DNA from: Marsupella aquatica
Taxonomy: Eukaryota > Plantae > Marchantiophyta
Length of the DNA stretch: 64,000 bases
NCBI GenBank assembly: GCA_973895155.1
Contig: OZ316898.1
Coordinates: 21,543,305 to 21,607,304 of the forward strand
Direction of reading: 5' to 3'
Position 1 is the stretch's first letter, and every line of letters starts with the position of its first letter. Of the stretch, positions 22,605 through 56,500 are shown one piece after another. Made by a program: the position numbers and the translations under genes. Below the pieces are notes generated by a model that saw only the letters and a program-made list of their open reading frames with translations, ran no database searches and had not been told where the DNA came from.

Positions 22605-24682
22605 TTGTCTTCATGAGTCCTTCAAAAGGTTCCAGATTATGTGTGTAGTCAACTGGACCATAGAAACTGATCGAGGCGAACGTCCTGGTACTACAGTTTT
22701 TAGAGTTCCATCTTGAGATTGGTAAGCTGCGAAAGGGGAAACAGTGAGCTAATATGGAAGTTGTCAAGCTTATTCTAAGACTTCCGCAGGTTTCTGAAAG
22801 GAAGACCGGGAGTAAACTAAAGAGAGATATCGATGACTTTACCTGGTGAGTTAAGGCAACTCATAGAAGAAGTTTTTCTTTATGGCATCTGAATTTCAGG
22901 ACTTGTGAGTCTCAAAATTTATCAGTCCGGCCGCGGTGTTAGTGACAAAGGACCGTCCTGAGATTTGCGTTGGTTGCTGAATACTATCCATCGTTTGAAA
23001 GTTTGGCAGTTGAATGAGAGGGGGCTTCTTTTTTGCGTCATATGAACTACGTTTTAAAGGGCAGAATGTACAGAAGAATTTCATTTAGTGTAGTTCTGTA
23101 TTTGTTTTGACAGCTCGGTCTGATTATTTCATAGTGGATTGCTGTCAGGTTTTGGAAAGGAAGAAGTGAAGGCTCACGCAACCATGCCTCTCAGATCAAT
23201 CTCTTGGAAGACCATTATTGGGATTAAATTGTCAGATTTCGTACATGATCTCACGACTTGCAGAGAGCAAGGCAGATATGTCAAAGATAGTTCAAAAGGA
23301 TCTCACAATGAAAAAGAGTATCTAATTGACAACCGATGTAGGTATGCAGTAGTTCCTATTTGGGGGAAACTCTAGCAGTTGTAGCTTATTCTGCTAACTT
23401 CCCACTCAGTTTCCGTTGCAAAGGGAGAATCTCCTGTTCCTTGACGATTGGGCCGGCGTGTGAAATAGCTCAAACCCATTGATATTTTAAACTCTCCTGT
23501 GCCCTTCTTCGGTCCAGTGTGTCCTCATTCTTGATTGGGTCATTATTTGGCATCTTGTACTCTGTCCTTTCCGTTCCCAAGTGGGGGATTTTAGACTTGA
23601 AAATCAATCTATTCGACAAAAATCAACGGAGGATTCATCATCCCAAACTATTGAATATCTTTGGACCTCGTTGCTACTGTAAGTGCAGAGAAGTACATTA
23701 AAGTATGCTTACATGTGGAGCATCACTCAATTTGTGCCTCTAGTTGCTACTTCCTATCCTGTTCCATCAAAAATAATGGTATGATCGAAGGCAAAGTTCT
23801 GGCAAGGCAGAGTGAAAAAGGGGGCAACGTGGCTCTCGTCTGCCATCTTCGTGCAAATTTTGCATACCAACAATGCTATGCAAATTGTGTATACTAACTG
23901 CATTAAACTCAATTTTGGACAGTCAAGTCCATGTCATATTGGGATCAACTGTCTCTCCTTGGAGGAGACTGCCCTATGGTGTTTCTTCTCCAAATCTTCA
24001 TTGACTGACAGATGCAATAACAAAACCCAATTGTAGTTGGAGAAGCTAGAGAAACCATAGGATCAGGTGTCCCCATATAGGAGAAGCCAGAGAAACTATG
24101 GGTGAATCAGTTGTCACCATATCAACAGCAATCGACTTGACAGAACTCAACAAATATGGAAGATAGAAATGTATCACTTATACTTGCGTGTCAAGAAGTA
24201 AAATTTAATACAAAAATGTTAAATGTTCTCTTAGGCTGTCATCAGTTGATCGTTGATTGTGTCTTCAAAGTTGGCCACCAACTGTCACTCCAACACACCC
24301 CTCTCATGAAATGTGAACTATAGTCATCACTATCTTCAGGGTTTTGAGGCCCAAATCTCAGCAAGGAATGCGGTCTTGGCATTGCCTGAGAAACAAGAAG
24401 CACCTACTTTTCAGACTAACTGAAACAGACACACAACACCAGAAAACAGCAGATCAACACTATCATGCCTGCCACCTAACGTATCCATGTGAAGTGCATT
24501 GGAGATTGAAAAGATCAACATCCACAAGAAGTGACCGAGTTGTAGTCATCTAGAGTAAGATCAATGGGCAAAACGAAGGGTAAACCACCCAAGATGAGTA
24601 TGCTGATGAGAATTGAACACGAATTTCAGGGAAAGCAGATCACCTTCCAATGAGTTACTGATACGAGTATCATAAAACCTGT

Positions 24683-26791
24683 CTACAGCTTTGTGCCAAA
24701 CACGCGACATCGTTCGCAACGTTTCTTGCAGATATCCTCAAGCATCTTCGCTGCTGCTGTACGCTCCTGCTGCATTTGTTTTGCCCGGGATCTCATCAAT
24801 TGACGTTCTTCCGTACCGCCTGTAGAAAAGTCATCGAGCCATTCAGCTATAAGTTTCCCGAGTTGGTACATGTCCGATCCCTTGGTGTATCTTTTCCTTT
24901 TGTCATTGTCTTCTTCCAACGTTTCCGCATCCCAACCCGTTAAGTCCTCACCAACCCATACTTCATTGTCGGGTCCAGCAGCTTCCAAGTCTATGATCAC
25001 CCATTTCCATTCACCCAAATCATTTACTTTGATAACGTTGGGCCACCTTATGTCCCTGTGGGTGTAGCCTTTCATGTGCAAGTCCGCAAGGCCGCATAAC
25101 ATGTCATGCGTGGCATTTACTAAATCCTTGCAATCCTTAGGCTTTGCATATGGGTCACCAACAGGTTGTAGTCGCAATACTGTTCTAGCCTTGGATCGTC
25201 GGACGGATATAAGTTGGATCAGGTACCTGGAGCCAGCGATTTTTTCATACAGGCATTCTATCGCGGTCACCTTCTCTTTCGTCAATCCTGGGATTTCCTT
25301 CGTCACGCAGTCAGGATAGATCGTCACTGCTCCACCATAAACTCTTGCTATTGGCTTATATAATGCCAAGGGGATGTCACTATCCAGTTCTTCCTGTAGT
25401 TTCTGTAGGAGACAGTGCATCCGAATGGTGCTATGTAGGAACTTGGCTACATCGCTCAACATATTCAAGTCATAGAGTTGTGAGATACTTTCACAAAGAA
25501 TTTCCTTGCCTCGCGGATAGAGCTTCAGCCATCGAAACTGCCTTCCACCGGAGCAACCACCAATCACATAAGGGAGCTTACCATAGAACAAAGGGCTCCA
25601 TGCCTTTAATTTTGAGGTGTTCTCACCTGCAGCCTCGTGCCGAAGTGCCGGGTCTGTCTTATTCTCCCATCGGAGAATGAGACAATCCCTCACAAACAGC
25701 TGAAAATCTGGTCTTAATAGCGGTTTTAGTGGTCGCGATGCTACAGTACTAGTCGGGGGATTGGGTGAATCCAGTAACCAGTCCAAACCTTTTAATTTTC
25801 CGTTTGCTGGAGCCTCCTCATTTAATAATGAGATGAACTCTCCAGTGAGAGTAGCCAATTCATGTGAGCTGGTGGCCTCATTGCCTGGACAACGACGCAT
25901 TATATGTCCGAACACAATGTCGCAGAAGGATGCCAAGTCTGTCGCCGCTGCGGGAATATCAAGCTCCACCAGCTCAGAAGAGCGTATTTTCTTGAAAATT
26001 ACAGGATTGCGAATTGGGAGCGGTACTGGTGTCTGGGACAAAAACTCCGAGAGTTCAAGGGCACTTCGTGGGAGCGTCGGAGGTGGTTCCAACAGTTTCC
26101 CAAAATAGCGCTCTCCAGCTTCAGCATCAGCTTTTGCTGCCAAGGACAGGCATTCCTGTGGTGACGGTTTTGCCTTCTTTGAAAGTCGCGCTCCCTCTGC
26201 GTACACACCAATCACGAAGTGTTGAAGAGGAAGAGAAAAACAGGAAAGTCATCCAATAATCACTCGAGCAAGGAGTCTACAAATTTGGCACGATTCCGGC
26301 AGAAATGCTTTATCGGTTAGCAAAGCAGGAAGACACAGGACACCTGTAATTGCAAAAGTGCTTTCCAAACAAATGCCAGAGCAAGGGCGACAGCTGCTGT
26401 CCATGATACCCTTGATCACTTTTCAGCAAAGAAAACAAAGCAGCAACAGAGGGGTGCTCAAAGGAAAAAACTCAACGAAAAGAGAAACCAGAACAAGAAC
26501 CAGAAGATACTGACGAGAAACACATTGCTGTGAAATTCAGTTGGAATTACCATCCGTAGAGTTTCCTTTTTGAAGCCGAATTGCCAACTTAATTGCCACT
26601 ATCAATCCGCCAGGTGCCACTGGGAACAGGCGCCGGATTATGTCTTCGAGCTCCATTTCCGACAACTCTAGCAACATAGGTACTCCGACCCAGTCAAGGC
26701 ATAGTTTCGCAGCAACGCCTCGCAGTCGTGCTTCGTCATGAATAGTTCTCCGAAGCAGGTTCATAATATTTTCTTCTTCACCACTCGCCAT
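24683..26791 (-). CDS. Crinkler (CRN)-like protein: short N-terminal helical (SAM-like?) domain, PD-(D/E)xK restriction-endonuclease-like domain, protein kinase
   Basis: Predicted exon 1 26791-26551 (GATG|GTAATT) splices in phase to exon 2 26196-24683 (polypyrimidine tract, ..GCAG|AGGGAG). REase-like motif RPDF..LILRWENK; kinase motifs HRDIRWPNV, IIDLE, SDMYQLG. Open to the stop codon. Confidence 0.82.
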
Positions 26792-28604
26792 TGGATCTTG
26801 CAGGCTGAACAATATACTGCTTACTTCTTAAGATATATGCTATGAAACCAGGCAGAGACAAGACAGCCACAAACGCAAGTTATAACAAAAGAAAGCACAT
26901 ACAGATGACAAGCAGAAACGAAACCCTCGGGTTGACAGAAATCGTAGCAACAGAGGAAGCGACAGAGGAAAGAGCACCACAAGGATGAAAACTACGGTAC
27001 AAGGCCGTGAAACTCACCATCCACCAAACCCTGGATCACCGAAAACCCAGTCCAAATCCTGCAAACGCACGATGTAAGGCCATTTGATCCGCAGTGTATC
27101 ATGACAATCAATTAAACATGCAACGATTCACCACCTCAAAATTTCCAAACCAGACTGCTAGCGAATCCGCCTCACTTCAGTCTATGCCGAGGGCTCGGAC
27201 TCTTATGCCGAGGGCCTCCTCGGTCGGCAGACAAGGAGTTGATCTCGTTCCCGACCAGTTGTGCCTTGTGTAAACCCCCGGGCCTATATTTGAGACCCCC
27301 CAATGTTGATCCGTTGCCGACCTGTTGTGCCTTGTGTAACCCCCTGGCCTATATTTGAGAACCCCTAATGTATATGTTTATGGTCCTACCTTACTCCTTA
27401 ACGAGGTATTGGTACTTGGTCCTCCATTCAGGATCTCCCTTCTCGAGGCAGATCTTGCCCTCCATTCGGGATCGCCCTTCACGATGCAAATCTTGGTCCT
27501 TCATTCAGGCTGCTCTACCCGCGGCCAATCTGGACCGTCCATTCAGGGTGCTCAATCCGCAGCTAATCTCCGCCCTCCATTTAAAAATGAACGGCCAGAT
27601 TGTTAGGGTTTAGGGCGTTCCTGCATCACCATCCAACGGACAGCTGCTATTGGACGGCCCAGATTTTGTTCACCGGGCCGGTGGTTTCCTGGGCGGGCGT
27701 TACTTAATCTAGGAGAGCAGCAGGATGCGGCCACTTCCCATTTCACTTTCTGGAAACGCCGTCAGGTTGGAAGTTTGTCGTCTGTGCAGGAGCCATTTCC
27801 ATCTCGGCCGGGATGAGCTTTCTCTCGCATTCTAGTCATTCTCCTTCGTGCCTCTCATTCCGTGTTCATCGAGAGCTTGAGTAGATTTGGGTGTTTTGTC
27901 TAGGCTCGAGACGACCGGCTGTGGTGAATGTGGGTGCGGCTGTGAGTTGACTGTTGGAGCACAACTCAACTTTGAGTGGCCTGATTTTTATTTCTCTTTC
28001 CATATCAATTGCTTTGGATGTATGCCATCTTTTTGAATGCGTGCCATACTTGTTTTATTATATGCTTATGTCGGTCATTCTAATGAACATTTGCCGCTCT
28101 ATTTGGAATCTGTTAATGTTGATGCTGAACATGACTGCTGAAGGTTTTTCTCTTGTGTTACTCCCGTTCTGACCTATGTTGCCGCTGTGTAGCAATAAGA
28201 TCTAGTGGAGTAAGGACAAAGTCGCTCAATCATGCCTCCGAAAACATTCCAAGGTGTTTTGACTGTTTTCTTGCATTTAGTTTTGTTCAGTACTCCCTCC
28301 GCGTTCGGGGCCGCTTCAGTTGTAGACTGCTAGGGGTTGCTTGACACTCGTTCATCTCTTCCCTTGTAGGACTCATCTTGAATCGTTACAGACCCAAAAC
28401 GAGGCTTCGGCTAACTGATCAATGCTTTCCCCATGAATGATGAAGCAGAGATCGCCAGAGAGCTTGCACCTTTGATGCAAGTGGAGTTTGATAGTTTAAA
28501 CATCAGTGCGAGAGGAGCTTAATAAGGGTTTAATGATTGCCAGCCAGATTCCAGATTCCAGACCAGAATTTGAACTCCCAGAATTGCTAGATAATTTATT
28601 TGAT

Positions 28605-30366
28605 TGTGCCACGGATCGTACTCGGAGAGGTGGTGGGACTCTGCTACCTCCGGTATGAGGCACGTCCTCATTAAGAACCCATTGTCCACTACCCCCTCGG
28701 CCAGGAGGCTAGAGGACTGGTATTTAGCTCCCTTGCCCCCAGGAGCCCGCGACTCTACTCAGTTTATCCCCTCGGGTAAGCCCAAAATCATTTTCAGATG
28801 TGCCTCATTGAGACACATCACTCTCCCGTGCGCTCGGGTTTGTTGACGAGCCTCGGTCGAAGTTCTGAATGAACTCCGTCATATCCTGCCCGTAGTACCT
28901 GTTTCCGTTCCAAGGGAGAGAGGCGAGGTGCTCAAACCCTTGGGTCTTCAGATAGCATGCATGCTTGGGGTGGAGGATGTTCTTGTGAACATTGTCCCCC
29001 ATGCGATGCATGGTCAGCTTGGCTATCGCAACCGTGGCCAAAGGCAACCCGGATACGGCTGCGGGTTCCTTCCTCTTCCTACCCCGAGACTGATTCCCGG
29101 GGTGACTAGAAGAAGGGGACATCTCTCCTTCCTCTCGGTCAGGTGGTGGTAGCGCAACTGCCGTGAGTATTGGTGTCGGGGCCGCTAGATTTACCATGTT
29201 ATCCCCTCGGGCTTGCTGGAGTGATGCTGGGTTGTTCGGCGCTTGTTGAGTCGTACCCCGCGGCCGTCGATTTAGGGGAGGGTGAGCCTCCTCGTCTTTG
29301 GAGCTAATATTCACCGCATTCACCATGGATCATACTCGGAGAGGTGGTGGGACCGGTGGCGGGGACCGGTTCGGTTGAGGCCAAGGAGGTGTAGGTGCGG
29401 GTACGGGCACGGGTTGGCCGGCACTGGTCGTTGATGGTAGAGTTGCCATGAAGTTCTGCAGGTGCCGGTGGAGGTTTTCCAAAGCAAGTGTAGACGGCCT
29501 TGTCGACCGGGTAGTGTTGAACTCGCTGTTGATGATAGCCCGGACCCAAGCAGGGATGTGGTCAAAGTGGTGCCGCTACAAGTCGATCATGCCCGGGAGA
29601 GTGAAGACCGCATCCGGGAGCCAAAGCAATGCTTCCCAGAAGCCGATGTATTTTCCCCAGTCAAAGAAGTACCCTGATACTTCTTCGGGTTGGTAAAGCT
29701 CGCTCTGGGATGGGTAATCAAAGTTAAGGAGATAGTGGTGTCGGCCTGCTAAGCGGATGGCTCTCTCGTATTCGCGTTTGATTTTGTATCGGCGCGGGTT
29801 GGCGTGTTTTAATGAGTCGGCCAAGTGCCCTCCGATAGACAGGAACTGTGTCCAGAATCGTATGGCCAAACTGGAAAGGATCGTGTGTGACATTCAGAGG
29901 AGATAGCAGGTGACTAAGGATAAGCGAGAGAGCTGGAGTCGAAGCTGGCGCGTGGACTGAAGAACTGGTGCACTGCAAAGGATCGGCCCCCCTTTATACC
30001 CTGAGAGCTCGTCGATCGCCCGATGCCTCCTCGTCGCTTATAGGCCGAGCCTTTCACGCTCGCAGTGTACCGGCCACTTTGCCGGTCCGGGTCAGCTTGT
30101 GTCAGTGGCCGCCTCCCGGAGTTTGTTATACGGTCCCGAGGGGGGGGGGAAGGGGGCCCATTACACGCTCGCAACCCGGGCATGCGAATGGCAACCTGCC
30201 GCCAGCCCGAACATGAATTCCTCTTATTGACTAATGATTTCCTACTCATAATGGCTACCTAAATACTGTCGTTATGCTAATAATAACAACCTAAGATACC
30301 CCTAACGCGCATGCTAAGCATGGTTAGACCGAATCACTCATTACCCACCGTACCAGCGGCGTCACA
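28605..30366 (-). mobile_element. LTR-like segment (TGTG...CACA, ~1.76 kb) with a TATA box and a decayed Transposase_32/PMD-like ORF
   Basis: TG/CA ends; minus-strand GGGTATAAAGGGGGG near 29985-30001; ORF pieces 29576..29893 and 28805..29326. The flanks TTGAT and CAATA do not match, so there is no TSD. Confidence 0.55.
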
Positions 30367-30904
30367 CAATACGCCATCCAAGCGACGCAAGATTCAGGGC
30401 GCACTGCCACCAGTAAGCATAAAAAATGTAACCATTTGGAAATGCCTTCGCTCGAAGACTACATCCGACAATGACTCTAATCCATCACTTGCTGCAATTA
30501 TTGACGACGTCAATACGCCATCCAAGCAACGCAAGATTCAAGACGCAGAAGGGAATTTGGAGGTGGCGAGCACAGTAAAGAACCAGATTGAAGGCCAACG
30601 ACAGGAATTCTCGAAGGCCAATGCTTCCCGACCAAAATACCGACCCAACAATAATGCAAAAGGGAATTTGAAGGTGACAAGCACATTAAGGAACCAGATT
30701 GAAGGCTGGTACAGGAATTCTAGAAGCATTGACCAAGCTTTGTTTCCTTTGTATTTCTCACGAACCTAATTGAATGGTGACACTTTTGATGCTAACGGAG
30801 TCCAATGGTTTCAACATGAACGTTATAGCTACAAAAGACTTTAATTGGAAATGTTATGGGAGTGCGAGATTACAAGTGAGTCACCATGAATGCTAGTGGT
30901 GTAT
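30367..30904 (+). repeat. T-element module with a repeat-protein relic (TPSK.RK twice, 37-aa repeats)
   Basis: ORF 30311..30769; matches 12374-12615 directly and about 49430-49936 inverted. Confidence 0.8.
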
Positions 30905-41522: not shown

Positions 41523-41538
41523 TACCAAGGTCAACCGA

Positions 41539-41566
41539 CCCTAAACCCTAAACCCTAAACCCTAAA
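41539..41566 (+). repeat. Interstitial telomeric repeat (CCCTAAA)4
   Basis: Four perfect units. Confidence 0.95.
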
Positions 41567-42242
41567 TCGAGAGAAGAACACATGGAAGGGAGATATTTTT
41601 GTAAGAATGGAGGGCTGGTATGAACAGAAGCACCAGCCAGACTTCCTTCAAATAAGCCACGATCCCTTCAAACAAGTTCAGTTCTCTAAGTCCTAGCTTA
41701 GTTCTCTCCTTGCTCCAAACTGAATCAGGCAAACCGAGTTTACACCAGTAACTAAGCCTTGAGATAAGGTTGACCCTAGTTTAAAGTGACAATATCGATG
41801 GGTTCTGCTGAAACCTGAATAAATCGCTTAGTTTAGACTCAATCGGAGTACTTTTAAATGCATTGGAAAGCTATCGACGGTGGCTAGAGGCTGGCACAAG
41901 CTAGGAGGATTGGGAGTTCACTAAGATTCTCTTGGAAGTCAGGTTGTATAACAGTTTGATATTGCCAGCTACTTGAGAGGTTTCGATTGTGGTAAGGCTC
42001 TAAAAGGAGGTCAAGTGGGACTACAATCAAAGTGCATGGCTGATCCAAGAGTTCCTGATCCAAGAGGGCTACCTGATCATCACTTTCCTCCCCTGGTCCA
42101 CAAGGCTAAGTTCACCTTGTGGAGTAAGCATGGGAGAGCTGTAAGTAGTGAGTAATTCCAGAAGTATGAAGAAATTGAAATTTTTAAATTTTTTTACGTT
42201 GTTTAAACTACACTTACTGTTAATATCGGGAAGTTACTTTAG

Positions 42243-42480
42243 TTTACGAGTTTAAGAGTATACTCAGATTACGAGTATACCAGTCTACGGGTTACTCTTT
42301 TACGAGTAAACTGATGGCGAGTAAACTTACTTTACGAGTTTACTAGTTACGGGTAAGCTCCACTTTACGAGTTTACTAGTTACGGGTAAGCGAGTTTACT
42401 AGTTTGCGACAGTATACGAGTTACGAGTATAGTAGTTACGACTTACTAGTTAGGGCATTACGAGTTGTGCCTTACGAGTT
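42243..42480 (+). repeat. TTACGAGT/TTACTAGT motif array upstream of the 800-aa ORF
   Basis: Many clustered TTACGAGT, TTACGGGT and TTACTAGT motifs. Confidence 0.85.
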
Positions 42481-42665
42481 GGCAACCGATGATCGCGACG
42501 TCTTACGGCTACTTTCAACGGGACTTAGCAACGGGATGGCGAGCGCGAATTGAAGGGAAGGGGAATTAGACCTCGAGCGCTCACTCCTGACTTATTTACT
42601 GCCACCTCCATTGTTTCTGCCAGCTCCCCCACTCCTTAGCGCACTCAACATAACGGAGGAGAGCT

Positions 42666-45068
42666 ATGGCGAACCTCGGTATTGATGAACAGTACCGAGT
42701 TGACACTCTGGCAATTCCTAAGAGCATAGTCGCCCGAATTCCACAAGCGCCCGATAGCTATGCAAATTTACGGACTTCCTTACAACAGCTAGGTTTGGAG
42801 CATCTACTTGCCGTCCCTTGGAAAGTAGAGCTCGACACATATTTGCAGGATTTTGTAAAGGGATCAATGCTTGCTCCTGAATGTCAACAAACTATTAGAG
42901 CTCGACCCAGCTTATGGACTGTAGAACAAATTGCTTATGCCTTCCGCTGCCCTTCAGAAGGAGAAGGATTATATTCAAAGAAGAAAGATTTGTCTACACC
43001 CTACTTCTCTGGGATTCGCAATCTCACCAATGGCTGGAATTTGACACAGTGTACTTCTCCAGATTTGAGAGTGCTTCTGGAATTTCTAGTACCCATTTTA
43101 CACCCGAAGAAGCCAACCATCTGTCCAGTGGCTTTGGTGAATACAATTGTAGCCGCACACAGTGGAGCCGTCCAGGTTAATTGGGCCCTGTTAATTTTCA
43201 ATGTGATGAAGGATCAGGTGAGAACCATGAAGGCAGGTAGACCCACTCATCTGCAGGTTTATTTGTCTCAACTCTATCATGCTTATGAATGTTTATATCC
43301 AGAGGAGAGAACGGAGAGAGGGCTGCTCTTGATTGAGTTAGGCATTGAAGAAGGCCTGAGTATGGAAGAACCAGTGGATGCTATTCCCCTGGATTCTCAT
43401 GATCAGAATGTGGATGCTGAGATGGAATTTGAAGATACACCTGCTCATAACTTAGAGCTGGTTCGACACCCCCTGGCTAACATGGTGTATTCACCAAGAG
43501 TTTATACAAGAGAATCTGGAGCTGGCGAAGACAGAGATTTCCCTGAGCAACCAGCCGACGTTGCTGAACTCGTTCTTGCAACTATCAATCTAAGGACCAA
43601 CTCATCCACACCTCCAAAGGCAGAAGCGAATCAACAACTCGTCGATAAGTTGACATCTCTTCTTAGTTGCAGTGATGATGGTCTTTTCGATGCTGTCAAT
43701 GATTTAAGAATGGAAGCTGTCAGTTTGAAGTCACCATTCCCTGATCAGTTAAGCCCTATCAGGATGACCTCTCCTCCAGGAGAGACAACACCAGTGGAAT
43801 ATGTGACTCTCACCCCTGTTACCCAACAGACCTCCTTTCAAGCAGGTGGTGACCTTGTTCCAGTAACAGACAATATTAGCTGTGCAGCTATTGTGGATGA
43901 TCTACTGGAGATACTACAGTGTAACCCTCGGCAGATAGTCACTGTAGTTAGCAACCTGGTGCAGCGATGTCCCACTGCTACCCCTTCTCCTAGTCGAAGT
44001 TTTCCCCCTTACAGCCCTGACTCTAACTATGAACCCACCGAAGGACCGTCCTATCATCAGACACAGTATGAGCATCCTTATGTTCGAAGGGATCTTCCCG
44101 AAGACTCTGATCCGCCCTCAGATGATGACTCTATTAGGTCTTATGAAAATTCTCTTTGGTCATCCCCAAGGCAAGGATTTGAGAATATTGATGTAGCTCT
44201 AAAATCAAATCCAAATCTAGTAGCAGTGATCACCTCGTCTACCCAAACCCCCAGGAATGCTACTATCGCAAGCAGGTACCCTAGACGTCCTGAGTCAGAA
44301 GTACACAGGTATGTCACCACTTGCAAAGTAATGCAGGCCAACAGACCACCGGTTGGAGAGTTCTGGAGATACTACTATCTAAAGAAGACTGAGGCAAGCT
44401 ACATTTTTGATCTTAGGTGTCTTGGAACTTCTAGAGTGGAAATGGCACAATTTGATGAGTTCTGGACTGACTCAATTTACTTTCGGCCTATTCTTGCTAT
44501 GATGCTACTCCAAGGTGATGTAGAGGTAGAGGATCCAGACCTAGTTCTGGCATACTTTGGAAACTTTGCCGCCTATGCCCTAGATTTTGTGATTTCCTTC
44601 CTGATGCAGAGCAAGAAGTCTACTGCTCCACAGCACGATTACATACCACGAGAACCCAAGGTTACCCTTGTTTCAACCAGTACATTGGCTGAGAAACAGA
44701 GGATCTGGAATAATGTCACTTCTCAGACTCTAGCTGAATTCAATCGATATTTCAGAGATGTCAGGTGGAGACTTCGCCCCTTCTATTCCAGGATGCTGAA
44801 TAGTGATGAGTTCCTGTTTCATTATTCCCAAGTGTACGCTGCTACTTGCAACAACTATGATGTGCTCGGGATCTACAGAGAAGCTCTTCGTATAGATTCA
44901 TGTTATTTAATGAAAAGGATGCCCTTGATGTATCCTGAGAGACAACTGAGGTGCCTACCTTACTCAAGAGGATCCCCACGCCAAGCTGAACTGATAGAGG
45001 TTACTCAGAACCGAATTGTTACCCTTGTGGAGTTGCTGGAACCCGACGACATCCGACAGCAAGCTTGA
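42666..45068 (+). CDS. Intact 800-aa retrotransposon accessory protein (N-terminal domain resembling bryophyte LTR-element ORFs, Transposase_32/PMD-like)
   Basis: Uninterrupted ORF. N-terminal motifs LGLEHLLAVPW..TIRARPSLWT..GEGL..LLEFLVPILHPKKPT..VNW..YLSQLYH, then a low-complexity P/S/D/E linker and an aromatic-rich C-terminal domain. No gag, RT or integrase motifs. Confidence 0.8.
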   Translation: MANLGIDEQYRVDTLAIPKSIVARIPQAPDSYANLRTSLQQLGLEHLLAVPWKVELDTYLQDFVKGSMLAPECQQTIRARPSLWTVEQIAYAFRCPSEGEGLYSKKKDLSTPYFSGIRNLTNGWNLTQCTSPDLRVLLEFLVPILHPKKPTICPVALVNTIVAAHSGAVQVNWALLIFNVMKDQVRTMKAGRPTHLQVYLSQLYHAYECLYPEERTERGLLLIELGIEEGLSMEEPVDAIPLDSHDQNVDAEMEFEDTPAHNLELVRHPLANMVYSPRVYTRESGAGEDRDFPEQPADVAELVLATINLRTNSSTPPKAEANQQLVDKLTSLLSCSDDGLFDAVNDLRMEAVSLKSPFPDQLSPIRMTSPPGETTPVEYVTLTPVTQQTSFQAGGDLVPVTDNISCAAIVDDLLEILQCNPRQIVTVVSNLVQRCPTATPSPSRSFPPYSPDSNYEPTEGPSYHQTQYEHPYVRRDLPEDSDPPSDDDSIRSYENSLWSSPRQGFENIDVALKSNPNLVAVITSSTQTPRNATIASRYPRRPESEVHRYVTTCKVMQANRPPVGEFWRYYYLKKTEASYIFDLRCLGTSRVEMAQFDEFWTDSIYFRPILAMMLLQGDVEVEDPDLVLAYFGNFAAYALDFVISFLMQSKKSTAPQHDYIPREPKVTLVSTSTLAEKQRIWNNVTSQTLAEFNRYFRDVRWRLRPFYSRMLNSDEFLFHYSQVYAATCNNYDVLGIYREALRIDSCYLMKRMPLMYPERQLRCLPYSRGSPRQAELIEVTQNRIVTLVELLEPDDIRQQA

Positions 45069-45277
45069 AGAGATCTTTAAGTATTTTTAGTTAACTTTAA
45101 GAGTAGTACATCTTATCTGATTTTTATAAATGTGCTCTAGAGCTTTAAAAGTCATGAAACCTTTTCAGTGTATAGTCTGCACTTAGGAAAGCCTACTGGC
45201 AAAATTTGAGGCTTTTCTGAGCTACGAGTAGGCAGTTAAAAATAGTTGAATTTACCAAGTTTTTACTTATGTTGAAA

Positions 45278-45387
45278 TTACGAGTTACGACTTAGTTAGA
45301 TTTTTACTAGTTAAGAGTTACTAAGTTTCCGATTACGAGTTACGGTAGACAGACAATTACGAGTTAATAGTTTACTAGTTACGAGTT
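45278..45387 (+). repeat. TTACGAGT motif array downstream of the 800-aa ORF
   Basis: TTACGAGTT near 45278, 45333, 45357 and 45379, plus TTACTAGT variants. Confidence 0.85.
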
Positions 45388-46305
45388 CATACTTAGCCAT
45401 TTTTCCGACTTTTCACTTACTGAATCGCCATTTTAACTTTTTGAGGGATATGAAGAGGCATGTCTTTTCGACCCTGTAACCTCTCACTCGACCGATTTTG
45501 ACTATAAGATAGTTCTGCCACTAGTGTAGTGGATGGTTAAGTTTTGCAGTTTTGCCTCTCCCTTGTGTTAAACTAGTTGATCATGAATCTATGAGTTCGA
45601 GATCAGGTTTAACATTTGGAGAGACTTACCTCCTTCTTGTATTTTGGAACCCAAATACTTGAAGTAAAACCTCAGTTATGAATCTCGTGAATTATAATGT
45701 CAGATTCCGCTTTGGTGACACATTGTAATCTCACAAGTTCTTAGAGTTAACTCATTGAGTTTAAGTTGCATTGGAAATGATGTTTTCACCTTCATGTTGC
45801 TTAGTACCATCTAAATGCTGAAGTATTTATCCTTTTAGATCTTGACTAAGTATCACTTAGGAAGAAAGGTCAAGACATGTTGCCGGCATTTTAAAAGGAT
45901 ACTCTAGTATGCAGTTTAGATCTGAAAAGCCGTGTGGATTTGGATTCCCTTAAAGTTATTCCATTATTACTTATGTCTAAGGAGTAACCTTGGTCTATTC
46001 CAGACTCCCTTAGCATACTCTAAGAGATTTTTCCTTGTGTTTCGTTAATTGCAACCTTTTGCTTAATTGATGGTTATATGATGTTGAGTTATCATCAAAA
46101 ACTGCTCACCGCTGTGGAGCGATCTTCAAAATACCTTAGTAAAGTAATCAAATTTGATTACTATGTGTGGAAAACATCTTAATTTCTTTATTATTGTTTA
46201 AAACTATCAAACCAACCCAATCTTGTTCTTTACGGGAACGAATACCGAGTTTGAAGACCTTTAAATGTGTTTTTGGTTCTTCATAGCAAACTACATGAGA
46301 TTTTT

Positions 46306-46323
46306 TGGCGCCGCTGCCGGGGA
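46306..46323 (+). promoter_or_regulatory. Primer binding site, tRNA-Asp type (Athila-like)
   Basis: TGGCGCCGCTGCCGGGGA after a T-run, 10 nt downstream of the inferred LTR end; one mismatch to the familiar Athila PBS TGGCGCCGTTGCCGGGGA. Confidence 0.85.
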
Positions 46324-46418
46324 ACAAATCAAGGATGGTTTGAAGTACAGGCAGTGAATGCCAAAAGGAGGTTAATTCAGTGAATCTGGAATAAACAAAA
46401 GAAAGGTGGAAGTTGACC

Positions 46419-47093
46419 ATGGAACCCCAAGGAGAATGGGAGTTCCCTCCATTACAAATTCGATCTTTCACAATGGAAAATGCACCAGAGGCATTTAGGG
46501 AGAGATTTGGAGGTGAAACTCCTTCCTCAATTTTGGAAAGAAAGAGAAAAGCTAAAGCCAAGAAGGAAAGACGAAATGGGGCTTAGTGGGGGAATATCCT
46601 TCCCAAGAAAGAGATGGTGAGGAAAAGCAGACCTCAGAAAAGAGAAAGAGCCTTGATTAGGTCAAGGGATAATCAAACACACATGATTATCAGTGCCACT
46701 GCAAGAGAGAGAACAACTATTTTGAGAAGGCAGGTGTCCAACATCAGAGGAGGAAGCTACTTTTGGGGTGGCGAATTGGTGAAGGTTGACTCCTGGGACA
46801 CCAATATTTTGTATGATTGTGTATTTGTTTTCAGAAGAGCCCTAGATGGAAGACTGGAATTGATTGAAGCCACTCAAGATGAGGAATTTGATGCCAATTT
46901 TATTCCCCCCTTACTAAAAGAACATGACATTAAGGAGGAAGTATTGGAGGAGGAACTTGAACATCAATTAAGGGAAACGTTGGATAAGTTAAAAGGGAAT
47001 CCATTGTGGAGAAACCAACTTGATTATGTTTTAACAGAGTTTTACCAGAATAATCCCAATTTAATACTTAGGGAGGAAAGACCAGTTATGACC
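46419..47093 (+). pseudogene. First internal ORF of the Athila-like element, one premature stop, truncated by telomeric repeats
   Basis: ATG at 46419 is in frame with ORF 46614..47105 through a single TAG; the frame runs directly into TTTAGGG at 47094. Confidence 0.6.
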
Positions 47094-48868
47094 TTTAGGG
47101 TTTAGGGTTTAGGGTTTAGAGTGTCATCCCCAGTTTTCACATGTGGCATACCAGTTTTTTAAGTACTGGTATGATTATTGAATATTGGGGGTGAGTTTGA
47201 CCCCCAGTTTGTTGTGTGCGCATTTTGGAGGGGCTAGGGGTGGGGGTACCCCGCAATTTTCGGGGTGCGTGTACCAGGGGGCGAGTGCCACCCTACTGTA
47301 GCTTTTGGGGGTGTAACGAGCTGGGGGTGAGGGTGGGGGAGGGGTTCCATGGGGGTTGAGGGTGAGGGTGGCCCCCAGTTTTGGGGGTGCGTGCACATGG
47401 GGGCGTGTGCAACCCTAATTGAGCATTGGGGGTGTAACGAGCTGGGGGTGAGGGTGGGGGAGGGGTTCCATGGGGGTTGAGGGTGAGGGTGGCCCCCAGT
47501 TTTGGGGGTGCGTGCACATGGGGGCGTGTGCAACCCTAATTGAGCATTGGGGGTGTAACGAGCTGGGGGTGAGGGTGGGGGAGGGGTTCCATGGGGGTTG
47601 AGGGTGAGGATGGCCCCCAGTTTTGGGGGTGCGTGCACATGGGGGCCTGTGCAACCCTACTGTAGCATTGGGGGTGTAACGAGCTGGGGGGGAGGGTGGG
47701 GGAGGGGTTCCATGGGGGTTGAGGGTGAGGGTGGCCCCCAGTTTTGGGGGTGCGTGCACATGGGGGCGTGTGCAACCCTAATTGAGCATTGGGGGTGTAA
47801 CGAGCTGGGGGTGAGGGTGGGGGAGGGGTTCCATGGGGGTTGAGGGTGAGGGTGGCCCCCAATTTTGGGGGTGCGTGCACATGGGGGCGTGTGCAACCCT
47901 AATTGAGCATTGGGGGTGTAACGAGCTGGGGGTGAGGGTGGGGGAGGGGTTCCATGGGGGTTGAGGGTGAGGATGGCCCCCAGTTTTGGGGGTGCGTGCA
48001 CATGGGGGCGTGTGCAACCCTAATTGAGCATTGGGGGTGTAACGAGCTGGGGGTGAGGGTGGGGGAGGGGTTCCATGGGGGTTGAGGGTGAGGATGGCCC
48101 CCAGTTTTGGGGGTGCGTGCACATGGGGGCCTGTGCAACCCTACTGTAGCATTGGGGGTGTAACGAGCTGGGGGTGAGGGTGGGGGAGGGGTTCCATGGG
48201 GGTTGAGGGTGAGGGTGGCCCCCAGTTTTGGGGGTGCGTGCACATGGGGGCGTGTGCAACCCTAATTGAGCATTGGGGGTGTAACGAGCTGGGGGTGAGG
48301 GTGGGGGAGGGGTTCCATGGGGGTTGAGGGTGAGGGTGGCCCCCAATTTTGGGGGTGCGTGCACATGGGGGCGTGTGCAACCCTAATTGAGCATTGGGGG
48401 TGTAACGAGCTGGGGGTGAGGGTGGGGGAGGGGTTCCATGGGGGTTGAGGGTGAGGATGGCCCCCAGTTTTGGGGGTGCGTGCACATGGGGGCCTGTGCA
48501 ACCCTACTGTAGCATTGGGGGTGTAACGAGCTGGGGGTGAGGGTGGGGGAGGGGTTCCATGGGGGTTGAGGGTGAGGGTGGCCCCCAGTTTTGGGGGTGC
48601 GTGCACATGGGGGTGAGGGTGGTCAAAATTGGGGGTGAATCACCCCCAATGTATGCATACTAGGAGTGAGTCCACGCTCCTATCGCGACGAGGTGATCAC
48701 AACTAGGGGTACGAGTAGTTGGCTTTTTATGTAATTTTGACTTTTTTAAAGTATTGGTAAAACGTTTCATTTTGGTGGATTTGCGCAAATAGCACGTTTT
48801 GGAACGTTACGTGCTCGCCTAGCACGTTTTTTTGACAAGTTTAGCAAAAAGAAAAAAAAGGGTTAGCG
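47094..48868 (-). mobile_element. T-element terminal unit 1: (TTTAGGG)3-TTTAGAG, stem-loops, expanded 121-bp satellite
   Basis: About 47108-47416 appears identical to 48890-49198 (offset 1782); the same terminus occurs inverted at 13560-13725 plus 20476-20506. Mobility is inferred. Confidence 0.6.
47294..48612. repeat. 121-bp G-rich satellite, about 11 near-identical units
   Basis: The ORF track repeats with a 121-nt period; G-runs are confined to the plus strand. Confidence 0.97.
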
Positions 48869-51545
48869 TTTAGGGTTTAGGGTTTATGGTTTAGGGTTTA
48901 GAGTGTCATCCCCAGTTTTCACATGTGGCATACCAGTTTTTTAAGTACTGGTATGATTATTGAATATTGGGGGTGAGTTTGACCCCCAGTTTGTTGTGTG
49001 CGCATTTTGGAGGGGCTAGGGGTGGGGGTACCCCGCAATTTTCGGGGTGCGTGTACCAGGGGGCGAGTGCCACCCTACTGTAGCTTTTGGGGGTGTAACG
49101 AGCTGGGGGTGAGGGTGGGGGAGGGGTTCCATGGGGGTTGAGGGTGAGGGTGGCCCCCAGTTTTGGGGGTGCGTGCACATGGGGGCGTGTGCAACCCTGT
49201 ATATATCTTCTCTGCACAGCGCGTGCAATGAGGCCGGTCTTCAGGCCATTTCAGGGTATTTAGGGACCGCGGTGCATGGTCTCCTACATGCAGTGCACGG
49301 TCTCAACATTTCATTATTTGGACTCCCACAACATTATTATCAAAACCTTTAAACTCCACTAGTATTGATTAGGGTGACTTACGGGTGGTTGCCGTAGGCT
49401 CCCATAACATTATTTTTTAAGTGTTCATACACCACTAGCATTCATTGTGACTCACTTGTAGTCCCGCACTCCCATAACATTTCCAATAAATGTCTTTTGC
49501 AGCTATAACATTCATGTTGAAACCATTGGACTCCGTTAGCATCAAAAGTGTCACCATTCAATTTGGGTTCGTGAGAAATACAAAGGAAACAAAGCTTGGT
49601 CAATGCTTCTAGAATTCTTGTACCAGCCTTCAATCTGGTTCCTTAATGTGCTCGTCACCTTCAAATTCCCTTCTGCATTATTGTTGGGTCGGTATTTTGG
49701 TCGGGAAGCATTGGCCTTCGAGAATTCCTGTCGCTGGCCTTCAATCTGGTCCTGACTGTGCTCGCCACCTCCAAATTCCCTTCAATCTGCATCTTGAATC
49801 TTGCATCGCTTGGATGGCGTACTGACATCGTCAATAATTGCAGCAAGTGATGGATTAGAGTCATTCACTGTCGGATGCAGTCTTCGAGCGAAGGCATTTC
49901 CGAATGGTTGCATTTTTTATGCTTACTGGTGGCAGTGGCGTGGCATGGTTTCAGGCTGAGTGTGCAGTGATGGAGCTTCTCTTCTGTACAACATCCATGG
50001 TTGCGGTATCCATGCCTTGCTACTCACCTCCATCTGTGTTGCAACTCCATTCAGACACTCCTAGGACCCAAATCGCCTTCACTGTCCAACCCACCATACA
50101 ACACTCTTATGTAAAGGCTGTGTCTCACATGCGATACATGGTATGTCTCCAAGTTTCAGCATATGGACTCCCACAACATTTCCGGTTAAAGTGGAGGCTC
50201 CCATAACATTTCCGGTTAAACCGTAGACTCCCATAGCTTTCATGTTGAAACCTTTAAACTCCGTTAGCATCAAATGTGTCACCATTCAATTTTGGACGTG
50301 GGAAATGAGATACAAAATTTTGGACGTGGGAAATGCCCATGTGCTCAGATGGGTATGTATGTTTCAAATTACAGTATTTTGAAGGTTGGGGGTTACGAGG
50401 GATGGGGTATTCCAAAACGCACAGCCACCATGTGTTGGGGTAATGCAAGTGCCAATGTGCTCCGAAGGGTATGTATGTATCAAATTACAGTATTTTGAAG
50501 GTTGGGGGTATGAGGGATGGGGTATTCTAAAATGCACAGCCACCATGGGCTGGGGTAATGCAAATTAATGCCCATGTGCTCTGAAGGGTATTAATAGGAT
50601 AATGTCCTGGTTAGAGGGCATTGTGGGATATAATGCCCGTAACTAGGACATTTAATGTACGTAAAAACTTGAGTGACTTTTTGGTAACAAACAAGAAAAA
50701 GTGAATCCCTGAAATAGAAAATTCAAATTAAAGGGTCATCCAAGAAGTGGTTGCTATGGAATTGGCCAAAAATATACCTTCTTTAGTTATATTAGATTCT
50801 ATTCATAGATATTGTGTTAGTATCAGGTAGGTGTTTTGTATAATCCCCTCCTCAAAAAAAGGGGTGCATTATGGAGAATTAATGCACTCAAATATACAAA
50901 GAGAAAAGCCACGAAAGTCTTTACGTATCAAAATTACAGTATTGAAGGTGAAGGGGGGTACGTGGGATGGGGGTATTCTATAACGCACAGCCACAGTTGA
51001 AGCCACTTTGATAAGTGATTACTCAGTTGAACAATAGGAGAGCAATGCTGCTCTAAGTGGAATGTCTTATTTTGTTTACGAGTGGAATGTCTTGTTTTGT
51101 GGACTACCGTAAACAGACATGTTCATTAATGAAGAAATGCGGTGCTGGTCAGACTGTCCTCACTGTTGTTTTTATAAAGTGGGATGAGAAGCTATTGACA
51201 AACCACATCATCACTGACCACACACACTCTTACTGTATAATAATCAGAAGTACTCACTGTACTGTCCAGTAGTCTGCGTTTTTGGATTAGTTGTGATGAT
51301 TTCTGTTCAGTCTGCTACTATAAGGAGGTTGAATGGGCAACCTTCCAGTATGGGTGAAGGTTTTTTCGGGAACAAACAGGCACAGCAGGGTAGTATGGTT
51401 GAATTGCCTAATCTATCTTGTTGTGGGCATTGTATTGCACCTCGCGCTAACCCTTGGTACACTCTTAATCTTAAAAGGTGTTCATCTGTAAAGGCCAAGT
51501 ATTCTGATAAACCCACACAACACTATTGAAAGAAAAGGAACAAGG
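48869..51545 (-). mobile_element. T-element unit 2: telomeric tract, terminus, satellite, 111-bp module and 848-2670 module
   Basis: TTTAGGG-TTTAGGG-TTTATGG-TTTAGGG-TTTAGAG at 48869-48903, then inverted matches to 12374-12845, 30402-30904 and 848-2670. Followed by GGTTTAGGGTTTAGAGT at 51544. Confidence 0.6.
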
Positions 51546-51669
51546 TTTAGGGTTTAGAGTATTCTGAGAAAACCACACACTGTTGACACTGTTTACATGA
51601 TAAATGGCCATTGTCAGTAAGAGATACAAAAGTTGAGGTCATGTAATGCGGTATTATGGTTCATATTAT

Positions 51670-52055
51670 TTAGGAAATTGGGCCATATACGTGGATATCA
51701 TGCACAAGCTAGGGTAATCTAATAATCGAGTAATGTACAACTAAGGTTAATGTTAGGAATACATCCGAACCTCGGGGTAATCCAATCACAAAGCAATGTA
51801 CTAGACAAGTTAATCTTAGGATATTGTGCCATACACACGGATACGAAAGTTGGGGTAATCTTATCCATCAATAAATATACATTAATTAATGTTTAGGATT
51901 TGTGCCATACACATGAATACAAAAGCCGGGGTAATCTTATAATCAATAAAGTACTAGTAAGGTTAATGTTTGGAAATTGGCCACACCCATGGATACAAAG
52001 CTGGGGTAATCCTACACATAGATACGAAGCAAATGCCGGGGTAATCTAATAATCA
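51670..52055. repeat. Degenerate tandem repeats
   Basis: Recurring GGGTAATC(T/C), GCCATACAC and GGATAC blocks. Confidence 0.7.
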
Positions 52056-53252
52056 TAATTAAAGTACAAATGAATGTATTAAGGAATGTACTAAGCTGGG
52101 CTGTAAAAATGTGGGGTTTTACATACATGGACACAAGACTATAAACGTGACGAAATGATGTAATCATGCAGGTCAGGTAAAGTAGGAAGATTGTTTGTTA
52201 CACCAACAGTCTTCGGCCACAAATGAGTTTTCGGCCACAAATGAGGTGTTGTACAACACATTTGTTATGTCATACAGCCATCCATTTGAGTAGTGTTTTT
52301 TTATCTAGATGTAAGTGTCCAGTGTGAGGGAAAATTGGCAGGTCATGTGGGACTGGGGAAAATAAATTTTGATTTGTGTGAAGTGCGGCTCACACGTCGC
52401 TTCTAGGTTCTGAAAATCTAGGGTTGATGGTAAAAATGAAAATGTATAATCTGAGTATGAAATAGATACGGAGGTGTCGAGGAGTAAAACTAGACCAGAC
52501 CAGAATGGGGCAGGGGGAGTTTAGGGTCCATTTATATTGAATGTAATGAGAGAATTGTTTACTAGAATAAATGGTACCCCATATTTAAATAACGTGTCTA
52601 TTGATCGATACCCAGGAAAGAAAATACCGTCCTATCTTCTTTGCACTTCAACCGATGCACAATGCTTGCCTTTCTAGAGAACAAGGTAGCCAAAACAAAT
52701 TCACCGAAGAGAATAGATAGTTCAAAACTCCTGACTCTAATTTACAAATACTACAAAAAAACATTTGACTCTTACCTGAAGTTTTCCTATCGTCTAAAAT
52801 CTTAAAGTTTCCCTTTCCTGAAGCTCAAATTGTTTTTCCTTCCCTGCCCTTCCTCAAGTTTTTTTCCCTAGTGCCTGAAGCTGGAGTTTTTTTTTCCTTC
52901 CCCCCTGACGGTGAAGTTTTTTTTTCTTCCTGGAAAAAGCTGAATTTTTTTTTGCTTGCTTTGGTTTTTGCTGTTTTTCTTCTCCCCCACTTTCACATTA
53001 TGTAGGTTTGTACATCATGTGCGAAAAAAACTAGGATACAATGTATGGATTTGATGAAAAAAATCACCTCTGGTTTAGGGAACCAATATAGAGCAGGTAA
53101 ATTCAGGCATGTACTTTGGCTGGTATTTGTCCCTGCAATACCCAAAATGCTGGTCCGGTGAGGTTTAGGGTCTTTTCAGTACGTTTGGAGTCCTTCTACC
53201 GGCGCAGGGCGCCTTCATGGGGTCCCTGCCCGCTTTGTTGCTTGCTATGACT

Positions 53253-53738: not shown

Positions 53739-56093
53739 TCACATGGGGAGCAATGAAAATAGGGATAATTGTAACCACGTCCAAAAGGTGAGATCTGTGA
53801 TCATAGCCATTCAAAAATACTGTCCTTCAAAACCTTGAGGACTTTAGTTTAAGAACTTTTCTAACAAACAGTTCAAGAATGTTTTTATAACAAAGAATCC
53901 AATAAAGTGTAAACTTTAATTTTATGGTGTTCAATTTTTTTAGATTTTCCCACACTATAGCAAACAAATCCACTGAATTTGTTTATTCTAATTCCAATTC
54001 AGTAAATATTACAATTCCGGTCAAATAGTACACGAACCATTTCAGATCTGAGTACCGAAATGCCGTAAGTTGTAATTTTTATCATTAGATTTATGAATAA
54101 TTCAACATGTAGGTGGGGAGAAAGGGGGAATTTTGATGTTGAGGTACTCACCTTCATAAATCTACTATTGATTTGTCCCAAGGAGTGTACAGTTCTTTCC
54201 TTGGTCTCGCCTCAATATTTGTACAATGTTGGCATGAATGACACTGCACAGAACACTAAAAGGATTTAGTGTCTTGAGGATGACCAAAAACAATGACAAG
54301 AAACCTGAAACTGAAACTCATTTGTCCAAGTGCATGTAGAGCTTCATATCATTGGCAACAATAGTGCTTGAAGCCAACTTACTTTTGAATGACGTGTAAG
54401 GCAATATCTTGTGAAAGAGGGCCGATAGCTTCCCAACTACTAAAGGAAGTAGATTTTGCACTCACAAAGTCATCCCAACAACCAGATCCCCTTGTGCAAT
54501 CTGAGAAACGTGGAGTATTCAATAAAAAGTTCAAAGCAAAATGTAATAAAACCATCATAAACTCAATATAATGAAATGTAACCATGTCCTTTGTGATAAA
54601 TTCTGCAAACCCTTCTGCTTTTTAAATATCTACTAATTAAAAGGAAAAGGATAATACACCAGAATTTACTTCAAAACTCACTGTCAATCATGTTCTCCGA
54701 ACAATAAGAATGATAGGGAGGGAAAATGTCAACCTGGGCATACGCCCAAGTCAGGGTGTGAAGCTTAATTTTCAGGATCCTGGAATTGTGGCCGGAGAGA
54801 GGCAGCTTGCAGCAACAAGTGCTTCAGGCTTCTTCCTCATCAGCATAGCCAACACCACTAGGAGACCAACCTAGAGCAAGTACAGGTCGAGCTCCCTCCT
54901 TGTTTGTGTAGTTCAATGTTCTGACCATGTTCAATGTGCTGCATTCCCTTGGGTTTGGATGATCTTCCCTTGGCAGAAATGAGTCACATTCCAGAGTTAC
55001 TCCATGCATAATGATTATTCACCTGCCCCTGGGGTTGGATGATCTTTGTGTGGGATAAATGCCCGGTTTGAGTTAACGGGCAAGTTTACGTGTTGCCCTA
55101 CGGGGTGTGGTTGGGACCGGGTGGGGTTGGGATAGGGTTGGGATGAGGTTGGGACGGTGTCAGGATAGGGGCGGGATGACCAGGTGTGACGGATGACAAA
55201 TCAAGGCCAAACCAGGCATAAATGAATCACACTTCAGAGTTACTCAAGGCAAAATGATTATTCTTCTGCCGCCAATCTGAATTGACTACTTGTAGCCTGG
55301 TGGAATCAGTGGATACTCATTACTTGGCGAGAGGTTGCACCATAAAGATTGTTATGGTTAGGAATCAAATAATAGTTGAGTGTTCATTAAGTGTTTATAA
55401 TACCTTGAAAGGGTTTAACAGTTTAATGATTAGATGCATGGGACCCGGATGGGATCCCATATGAGCTTACACTTTGAATCGTTCAACAATCTGAACCATA
55501 AAATGTACAAGGGTAAATTTATAAGAAGGTAATGGCATTGTGACTTTTTTCATCAAAGCAAGCTGGAGTGCCAGTTCCTTGTTATTAGGATATATCTAGA
55601 TCCAGACTAGCTCCAGAGTACCAAAATCTCTGCACTTTTGGGGCACTCTGTTGTGCTATGCATTTGAGGGAGTATTCATATCTATAACTAGACCAATGCC
55701 CGTGCGTTGAACAAAAGATGTTGACATGAGAAAACATACCAAGGAGAGAGAAAGAGTAAAAGTGAGGAAAAGATATCAAAGTGAGAAAACTAAGTGAATA
55801 GTTTAGCTACTCATTTGCTAAACTAACAACAATAAGTTCAGCAGTTAATTGGCAAGGGAGTCCACCCTACAATTTAGCTGGTTGCAGTCAAACTGGAGTT
55901 TGGACTTTGAATGCCATAAACTTACATTCCACCATGGGTGAGTGCAATGTGTGTATTTAGGCAAAGCTCAGATAATTGAAGGGAATGGGCTTACTCCCCT
56001 CTTTTATAGGGGGAGTGACACTTATTTCACTGACAGTTTACATAAGACTGCAAGATGGGCATCACTAGAAGAAATTAATAAGAAATCATTAGT

Positions 56094-56500
56094 AAACCCT
56101 AAACCCTAAACTTTCTACAGTAGTTGATTCTAAGTGTGTTAATTTATATATATAGTGCACGTTGCACATATTGGTGAGAGGCAGCCAGGGGTGAAGTCTC
56201 AATGTGTGATCACATGTAGGGTCTGTTGAGGGGAATCTAACATTTAGGATACTTAGACCAGTACTGTCAAAGAACTCACACTCCCCTGCTGTAAATTAAG
56301 CCGACATTGCTCCAAAGCAGAGACAAACTTTCTAAGTTCATTGATCTACAAAACTCTCCCCACATTGAGACCTTACTAAAATAGAAAACGAGGAAGAAGT
56401 ACATTTAAGAAAACTAAGGACCAATTTCCTGAAAAAGGCCAAACAAAGTACAATGGAGTAAAGCAAATTATAGAGATAAACTAAACCCTAAACCCTAAAC
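56094..56500 (+). repeat. Two short interstitial telomeric tracts (56094-56111 and 56481-56500)
   Basis: AAACCCTAAACCCTAAACTTT at both sites. Confidence 0.85.

Follow-up and report, generated by a model that had tools for sequence, protein, structure and literature searches.

A high-copy, non-coding repeat with a fixed end on telomeric tracts in Marsupella aquatica

Short telomeric tracts lie at several places within a 64-kb window of Marsupella aquatica DNA (Marchantiophyta; contig OZ316898.1, positions 21,543,305 to 21,607,304), which is the whole stretch that we analysed, and three of them lead directly into the same end of a repeat that we refer to as T. Its parts are a head that folds back on itself, a G-rich array of 121-bp monomers and a body of variable sequence; we use X, Y and Z as names for parts of the body, and A and B for two long copies on the minus strand. 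An original prediction, made from the sequence alone, had described a telomeric tract, a terminus and a unit of about 1.75 kb here, and had proposed that they belong to a telomere-attaching mobile family. The tract, the terminus and the unit (unit 1 in Table 1) are all present, and T is a real, very high-copy, non-coding repeat family with a fixed end on telomeric tracts. The architecture is real and unusual, and its status as a mobile element is unproven. Counts of T and comparisons of its flanks are those within the window.

Table 1. Coordinates of the T chain, of the fragment on which it sits and of neighbouring features, in positions of the window.
Feature	Position	Strand	Description
Tract 1	47094-47121	+	(TTTAGGG)3 then TTTAGAG, equivalent to (TTTAGGG)3.7 to 47119, then AG; register 0; flank ...GACC
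T head, unit 1	47122-47237	+	Fixed terminus TGTCATCCCCAG; ~115 bp
121-bp G-rich array	47238-48613	+	11.4 copies; 49% G; 11 G-quadruplex (G4) motifs
Unit 1 tail	48614-48868	+	255 bp, unique in the window; hairpins, T-run, A-rich stretch ending GGGTTAGCG
Unit 1, whole	47094-48868	+	Tract 1, head, array and tail; ~1.75 kb
Tract 2	48868-48903	+	Variant repeats TTTATGG and TTTAGAG
Second T head and 1.5 monomers	48904-49198	+	Directly after tract 2
Unit 2 body	49199-51469	+	Mosaic of X and Y; array joins a different body at 49199
Third tract	51544-51557	+	TTTAGGGTTTAG; no T head
Cut open reading frame (ORF) piece	46587-47102	+	Only the first 154-158 aa of its relatives (289 and 294 aa) align
5.5-kb 'seed' fragment	41567-47093	+	800-aa ORF and cut 172-aa ORF piece, same frame; outward-pointing tracts on both sides
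Left-cap tract	41538-41566	-	(CCCTAAA)4 on the plus strand; attached sequence runs leftward from the end of a 73-bp tandem array
Copy A tract and terminus	20476-20506	-	(TTTAGGG)2 and first 16 nt of T head, then CTTAA
Insertion splitting copy A head	13726-20470		6745 bp; ends TGTCAGA...TCTGACA; 5-bp target duplication CTTAA
Copy A, rest of head and 3.5 monomers	13228-13725	-	~88% identical to units 1 and 2
Copy A body	8179-13227	-	370-bp piece, degenerate tract just before X head, then X and Z
Copy B	20507-30904	-	No T head; X, Z and kinase-like ORF; far end 20507 abuts copy A tract
Kinase-like ORF	24683-26215	-	510 aa; weak Pkinase_fungal/Pkinase matches, HRD loop
LINE-1-like reverse transcriptase (RT) ORF	5959-7788	-	E 3e-40 to human L1 ORF2p; only RT in the window
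Second small chain	56093-56500	-	Two C-strand tracts around a 370-bp piece; orientation opposite to the 47-51 kb chain

Each of the three T termini, of the pattern TGTCATCCC(C/T)AGTTTT, directly follows (TTTAGGG)n and begins at the same base, and no tract-less copy was found in the window with two mismatches allowed. A pattern of 25 nt that takes in both tract and terminus occurs three times in the window, as against none in 100 shuffles. The left flanks of the three tract-to-T junctions are mutually unrelated and their tracts differ in length, and a search of the sequences preceding the tracts for a shared 3'-end motif returned none. The expectation that copies would share this end next to telomeric repeats, and would share no flank beyond the tract, is borne out by these junctions.

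The flank that precedes tract 1 is an ORF that has been cut. The tblastn alignment of this ORF stops at 47093, immediately ahead of the tract, and its C-terminal portion of about 135 aa has no match anywhere in the window, including the 17 kb downstream, so that a simple insertion of the chain into the ORF is not the explanation. It had been suggested that an Athila-like ORF stops at the tract. The cut is genuine, the relatives of this ORF being longer by about 135 aa, whilst the Athila label is unverified, with neither Pfam nor Atlas giving a match to any ORF of the fragment, the 800-aa ORF included. Taken by itself, the fragment (41567-47093) has the look of a linear piece of which both 3' ends were healed.

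Mapping maximal exact telomeric tracts on both strands gave seven that lie on unrelated flanks, once an old tract that is conserved within both A and B had been set aside. Their starts all fall in register 5, 6 or 0 of TTTAGGG, for which the probability by chance is around (3/7)^7 = 0.003. The flank supplies 0-2 G in six of the tracts and AGGG in the other, and in five cases the last bases of the flank are G, GG or GGG. Given this common start register the tracts look telomerase-made, and in-register microhomology has likewise been taken as evidence of telomerase at vertebrate break sites (PMC2246262). On the plus strand the tracts run in the order C C, G G G, C C, pointing outward from the 5.5-kb fragment, with a 21-kb mosaic to its left (41538 to 20507, including copy B and the kinase-like ORF) that is followed by a tract and copy A, and with unit 1, a tract and unit 2 to its right. 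The pieces joined by tracts are of 370 bp, 1.75 kb and 21 kb, and T is the partner in three of the seven. The proposal of a family that attaches to telomerase-healed ends fits the register of the tracts and the cut flank, and it is in the further claim of a dedicated mobile element that it is unproven. The piece enclosed by the second small chain is unique in the window, and both of its flanks end ...AAAG before the tract.

The T head opens with an imperfect fold-back of ~73 nt, inside which is a hairpin of 9 bp; a second hairpin (GGGGGT..ACCCCC) lies next to it. The C-rich strand of the head folds as a compound stem-loop in which the CCCUAAA tail is left single-stranded (z = -4.0). The array has a higher-order pattern with a period of 3-4 monomers and one G4 motif per monomer on the plus strand, and its G-rich strand shares the polarity of the telomere G-strand. 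A telobox-like AACCCTAA is found in 7 array monomers, in the orientation opposite to that of the tracts. Three of the tracts end in TTTAG followed by AG(T) (47115-47121, 48897-48903 and 51553-51559), where copy A has TTTAGGG; these ends could be the result of telomerase reading a base or two beyond its template boundary, rather than being part of T.

Read data in the form of short Logan contigs reveal that the head, array and tail of T are far more abundant than the flanks. These contigs break inside the telomeric tract, and joints were judged by a 31-nt bridging rule. Contigs from three other organisms cover the tail of unit 1 and reach 24-29 nt into the variant-rich tract 2, overlaps that fall just short of this rule. 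The stretches covered are 48747-48892 (2 differences), 48747-48897 (15) and 48515-48897 (4). They indicate that the join between tail and tract was inherited and not made at this locus, and since tail and tract recur together in other organisms, the far end of unit 1 is no random truncation. Contigs of two organisms, aligned at 49795-49932, reveal other copies of X in which a 138-bp tandem duplication is stitched with TTTAGGGTCC, and a contig of one of the two joins a tract to the middle of the unit 1 tail (47119 to 48731).

T has no coding capacity of its own. Neither T nor its longer copies hold an ORF with a family match, a protein search with the array ORF found no relatives, and no ORF for a transposase, Rep, helicase, recombinase or endonuclease was found in T. 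Rfam returned no family for the whole window at gathering score and no hammerhead for 46500-52500 at E<=10, whilst ARAGORN reported no tRNA-like part and a scan for bacterial promoters and terminators only recovered the T hairpins again. Exact-pattern scans of metagenome contigs, made with the T head and with an array 21-mer, gave no match, and four T sequence strings matched no published paper text. Kinship with the Penelope-like elements (PLEs) Athena and Terminon had been suggested and is not upheld, there being no RT in T and no hammerhead at E<=10; extension of the longest copies within the window in search of a PLE RT or an HUH-Rep ORF also gave no family match. The window had moreover been described as free of RT, Rep and hammerhead, which is correct for a Rep ORF and for the hammerhead but overlooks the LINE-1-like RT.

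Several identities for T were considered and set aside. As the long terminal repeat (LTR) of a retrotransposon, T starts with TG but has no CA end or primer-binding site, and 40 nt separate the purine run from its head. A Helitron was rejected in that hairpins are present, but the termini and flanking bases misfit and there is no Rep or helicase ORF. Insertion of the TRAS/SART or MoTeR type was discounted, the C-terminus of the cut ORF being absent from the 17 kb downstream and T being without RT or endonuclease. A retrocopy of telomerase RNA was dismissed for T, which is kilobases long and very high-copy.

The second terminus had been expected to carry about 310 bp of identity with the first, and the match proves to be 99.7% over 323 bp (47094-47416 against 48876-49198, including the last 28 nt of tract 2). 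What follows had been taken as a longer unit of ~2.7 kb; this unit 2 does start with the same terminus, but it is a mosaic, with its X part common to 12374-12847 and 30402-30904 and its Y part common to 848-2221, and its homology with the other window copy stops at 51469, 76 bp before the third tract. Read depth along the body of unit 2 varies widely. A third junction had been placed at 51546, where there is indeed a tract but no T head. This tract forms the end of a 38-bp insert that lies between the two copies of a 22-nt direct repeat (51496-51517, 51558-51579; 20/22 identical), and exact contigs from three organisms cover the site. The third tract is a separate small event and not a copy of T. 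The insert resembles vertebrate insertions of telomerase RNA or tracts. Between 1 and 3480, a copy of the distal body of unit 2 (848-2221, minus strand) sits between 790-bp direct repeats (1-790 and 2701-3480, 93% identical), an arrangement that has a 2.7-kb period and is without telomeric tracts.

The inverted copy that had been located at 20483-20506 is also present, as the terminus of copy A, and is not a stub, having been split from its remainder by the 6745-bp insertion; self-comparison of this insertion found no internal LTRs. A 21-bp duplication present in the heads of units 1 and 2 is absent from copy A and, given this and the ~88% identity, copy A is an independent and older junction with a different left flank. 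Its hairpin carries a paired change relative to units 1 and 2. We rejected this change as proof of an RNA structure, both of its halves being of C-to-T type at the same CAG/CTG site, and two deaminations may account for it.

After the array, unit 1 continues into its unique tail, unit 2 into X, and copy A into a 370-bp piece, which shares only ~45 nt of the X head, and then X. A read joint from 47117 to 49196 reveals another genomic copy in which a tract is joined directly to the X head, and with the degenerate tract of copy A this suggests that X is a second recurrent 'head' on tracts. The T units do not look like truncations of one master sequence. The chains had been predicted to be polarised and variably truncated; polar they are, but unit 1 ends in a tail that is absent from the other copies. 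The homology between copies A and B stops at 8179, where LINE-1-like sequence begins, and there is no tract at this junction. The kinase-like ORF begins in sequence common to both copies and extends on in B only. Its relatives, at 50-68% identity, come from Calypogeia fissa, Ceratodon purpureus and metagenomes, and the two C. fissa loci share the coding region only, with no tracts and no T, so that the kinase gene is not tied to T.

Cut flanks, telomerase-type tracts, a fixed start base for T and polar chains can all be read directly from this locus. The interpretation that we favour, tentatively and with somewhat less than even confidence, is that T is a subtelomere-type, tract-bounded duplicon that spreads at the DNA level onto telomerase-healed breaks, as may be compared with yeast Y'. 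The starting point would be a break that exposes a 3' end, whatever the sequence; the ends concerned here are those of the ORF cut at 47093, of the tail at 48868 and of copy B at 20507. Telomerase adds to such an end two to five TTTAGGG repeats, a step that we consider demonstrated. The new tract may then pair with an interstitial tract that bounds T, or another duplicon such as X, and break-induced replication or synthesis-dependent strand annealing would copy T along with the sequence beyond it. Copying would eventually halt, or the DNA would break again, upon which the cycle could repeat or the end be ligated, and polar chains would result. As each such event would add a further tract-to-T donor junction, T would recur and amplify itself.

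The joined pieces look like DNA and not like transcripts. It is unlikely that a 21-kb mosaic represents a reverse transcript, and the fact that it is joined in the same way as the other pieces argues for joining and copying at the DNA level. Because the tracts also join this 21-kb piece, a 370-bp piece and X, and because a 138-bp duplication has been stitched, the data favour a general process of DNA-level repair and copying over a dedicated retroelement, with neither being proven. T itself displays no retroelement features, having neither an RT nor a ribozyme nor any ORF for which relatives were found. A number of considerations weigh against the favoured interpretation. Neither a donor locus nor a copy at a true chromosome end is seen in the window, at 14-35 bp the tracts offer little length for an invasion driven by homology, and the register test has an n of seven tracts only. 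The presence of the tail after the array in unit 1 and of X in the other copies means that at least two donor types are needed, and the depth of the Logan contigs is unusable as copy number. In addition, the conserved hairpins of the head, with one paired change between two lineages, hint at a functional terminus.

An RNA-mediated route is a serious but doubtful alternative, in which T would be a non-autonomous retroelement whose C-rich transcript ends ...GGGGAUGACAC(U/C)CUAAACCCUAAA and anneals to the telomerase-made 3' end of the G-strand. Equally doubtful is its second part, by which an RT acting in trans, whether of the endonuclease-less Penelope type or telomerase, would copy the transcript before the 5' end is healed and the next copy added. 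Endonuclease-less PLEs have been described as attaching to G-overhangs via reverse-complement telomeric repeats (PMC8557442), and at this locus the terminus is fixed, units 1 and 2 have in common the variant repeat adjoining it, folding of the putative 3' end leaves its CCCUAAA tail free (z = -4.0) and polar chains grow on cut flanks; that the copy A hairpin was kept through a paired change is weak evidence in the same direction. The window, however, holds no PLE RT, its sole RT being LINE-1-like, and no hammerhead adjoins the repeats. The far end of unit 1 is a distinct inherited tail and not a truncation point, and an RNA route cannot account for the 21-kb mosaic and the tandem duplications that are held together by tracts of this sort. 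We give slightly less credence to the specific possibility of an RT-less land-plant retroelement that colonises telomerase-healed ends and is copied by an endonuclease-less Penelope-type RT in trans or by template-switching telomerase. If this were true, then break healing would directly feed the spread of a selfish repeat.

The remaining explanations are all improbable, if to differing degrees. The chain could be the relic of a former chromosome end, built at the terminus as head, array, tail and telomere and later internalised by fusion or inversion, with no such events taking place at internal sites. Internal tracts are known from the subtelomeres of yeast and humans (PMC6410037), the G-rich strand of T has the polarity of the telomere G-strand, and the tail abuts a variant-rich tract, as is usual where a telomere has its inner edge, an arrangement present in other organisms too; several inversions would nonetheless be needed, given that the tracts in the window point both ways (C C, G G G, C C). 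A shade less probable again is site-specific insertion, whereby T would be mobilised by an endonuclease, a recombinase or an HUH protein into a pre-existing (TTTAGGG)n, or a circle would recombine via its own tract, in either case with tract on both sides. Whilst unit 1 is flanked by tracts, TTTAGGGTTTAGAG recurs at 47108, 48890 and 51546 and the region has many short interstitial tracts, there is no continuation of the cut ORF beyond the chain and the far ends of copy A and unit 2 are without a convincing tract. No common 3'-end motif precedes the tracts, the third tract belongs to another repeat, where it has a separate 22-nt direct repeat, and there is no transposase, Rep or recombinase in T. 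The least probable explanation is that high-copy repeats have been mis-joined or collapsed, or that T is the start of an LTR (TG...) after a polypurine tract. Three different left flanks, one of them a cut ORF, precede the head, no primer-binding site, CA end or paired plus-strand LTR lies within 47 kb, and contigs of four runs span the tail and 24-29 nt of tract 2. These observations must be set against the 99.7% identity of the heads of units 1 and 2 in very high-copy sequence, the TG with which T begins, the purine-rich runs before two tracts and the presence of the long direct repeats A and B. The shortness of the Logan contigs does leave some room for a misassembly of the chain.

A literature search found no report of telomerase-tract stitching in plants or bryophytes, nor of T, and in the literature that we found telomerase repair of internal breaks is described for vertebrates only. 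Telomere-associated repeats that are mobile or spreading are rare in plants according to a 2025 review, in which only Selaginella PLEs and Silene Retand are named (PMC12477314). If the pattern seen here were genome-wide, it would provide a natural system in which to study how telomerase competes with end-joining at internal breaks, show how healed ends gain subtelomere-type sequence, and bear on whether healing drives both repeat amplification and transposon erosion. It would also permit DNA-templated and RNA-templated extension of healed ends to be told apart directly.

The telomerase-made insertions of vertebrates (Nergadze et al. 2007, PMC2246262; PMC8537989) resemble this locus in their short exact tracts, their position at break sites and their in-register flanks, and we count as a further likeness that extra templated sequence can be co-inserted. 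All seven tracts in the window likewise consist of short exact repeats that start in register with the end of the flank. The difference is that in vertebrates the break reseals with a tract or a telomerase-RNA fragment only, whereas at the T junctions kilobases of a recurrent high-copy repeat come after the tract, with no return to the sequence that was broken.

What marks endonuclease-less PLEs, according to the published description, is a PLE RT together with telomeric repeats in reverse complement and a hammerhead beside them (PMC8557442). T is like Athena, Coprina and Terminon in having reverse-complement telomeric repeats at its end, in joining to the G-strand, in its polar chains and in the capture of host sequence (PMC8557442), but unlike them it has no PLE RT or hammerhead, its distal ends are no simple truncations and pieces other than T are joined in the same manner. 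Telomeric repeats at the 3' end are found with all three T heads, those derived from an element and those derived from a healed end being indistinguishable. TRAS/SART, MoTeR, HeT-A/TART and Zepp are telomere-specific non-LTR elements, and T shares with them an association with telomeric repeats in one orientation, head-to-tail arrays and short non-autonomous partners. It differs from them in that it is without RT or endonuclease, has no poly(A) at its fixed end and sits in a target that does not resume.

Yeast Y' elements and the boundaries of human subtelomeric duplicons carry internal telomeric tracts. They and T alike have head-to-tail units split by short tracts of telomere polarity, more than one unit size and G-rich minisatellites, and this arrangement is found here as tract, unit 1, tract and unit 2 on the plus strand and as copy B, tract and copy A on the minus strand. 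Unlike Y', T is without a helicase ORF, its chains lie in both orientations within a region that is rich in transposons and apparently internal, and its tracts sit on freshly cut, unrelated sequences. Y' elements and human duplicons spread onto new ends by recombination or break-induced copying and, if T is indeed a tract-bounded duplicon as we tentatively favour, it may do likewise.

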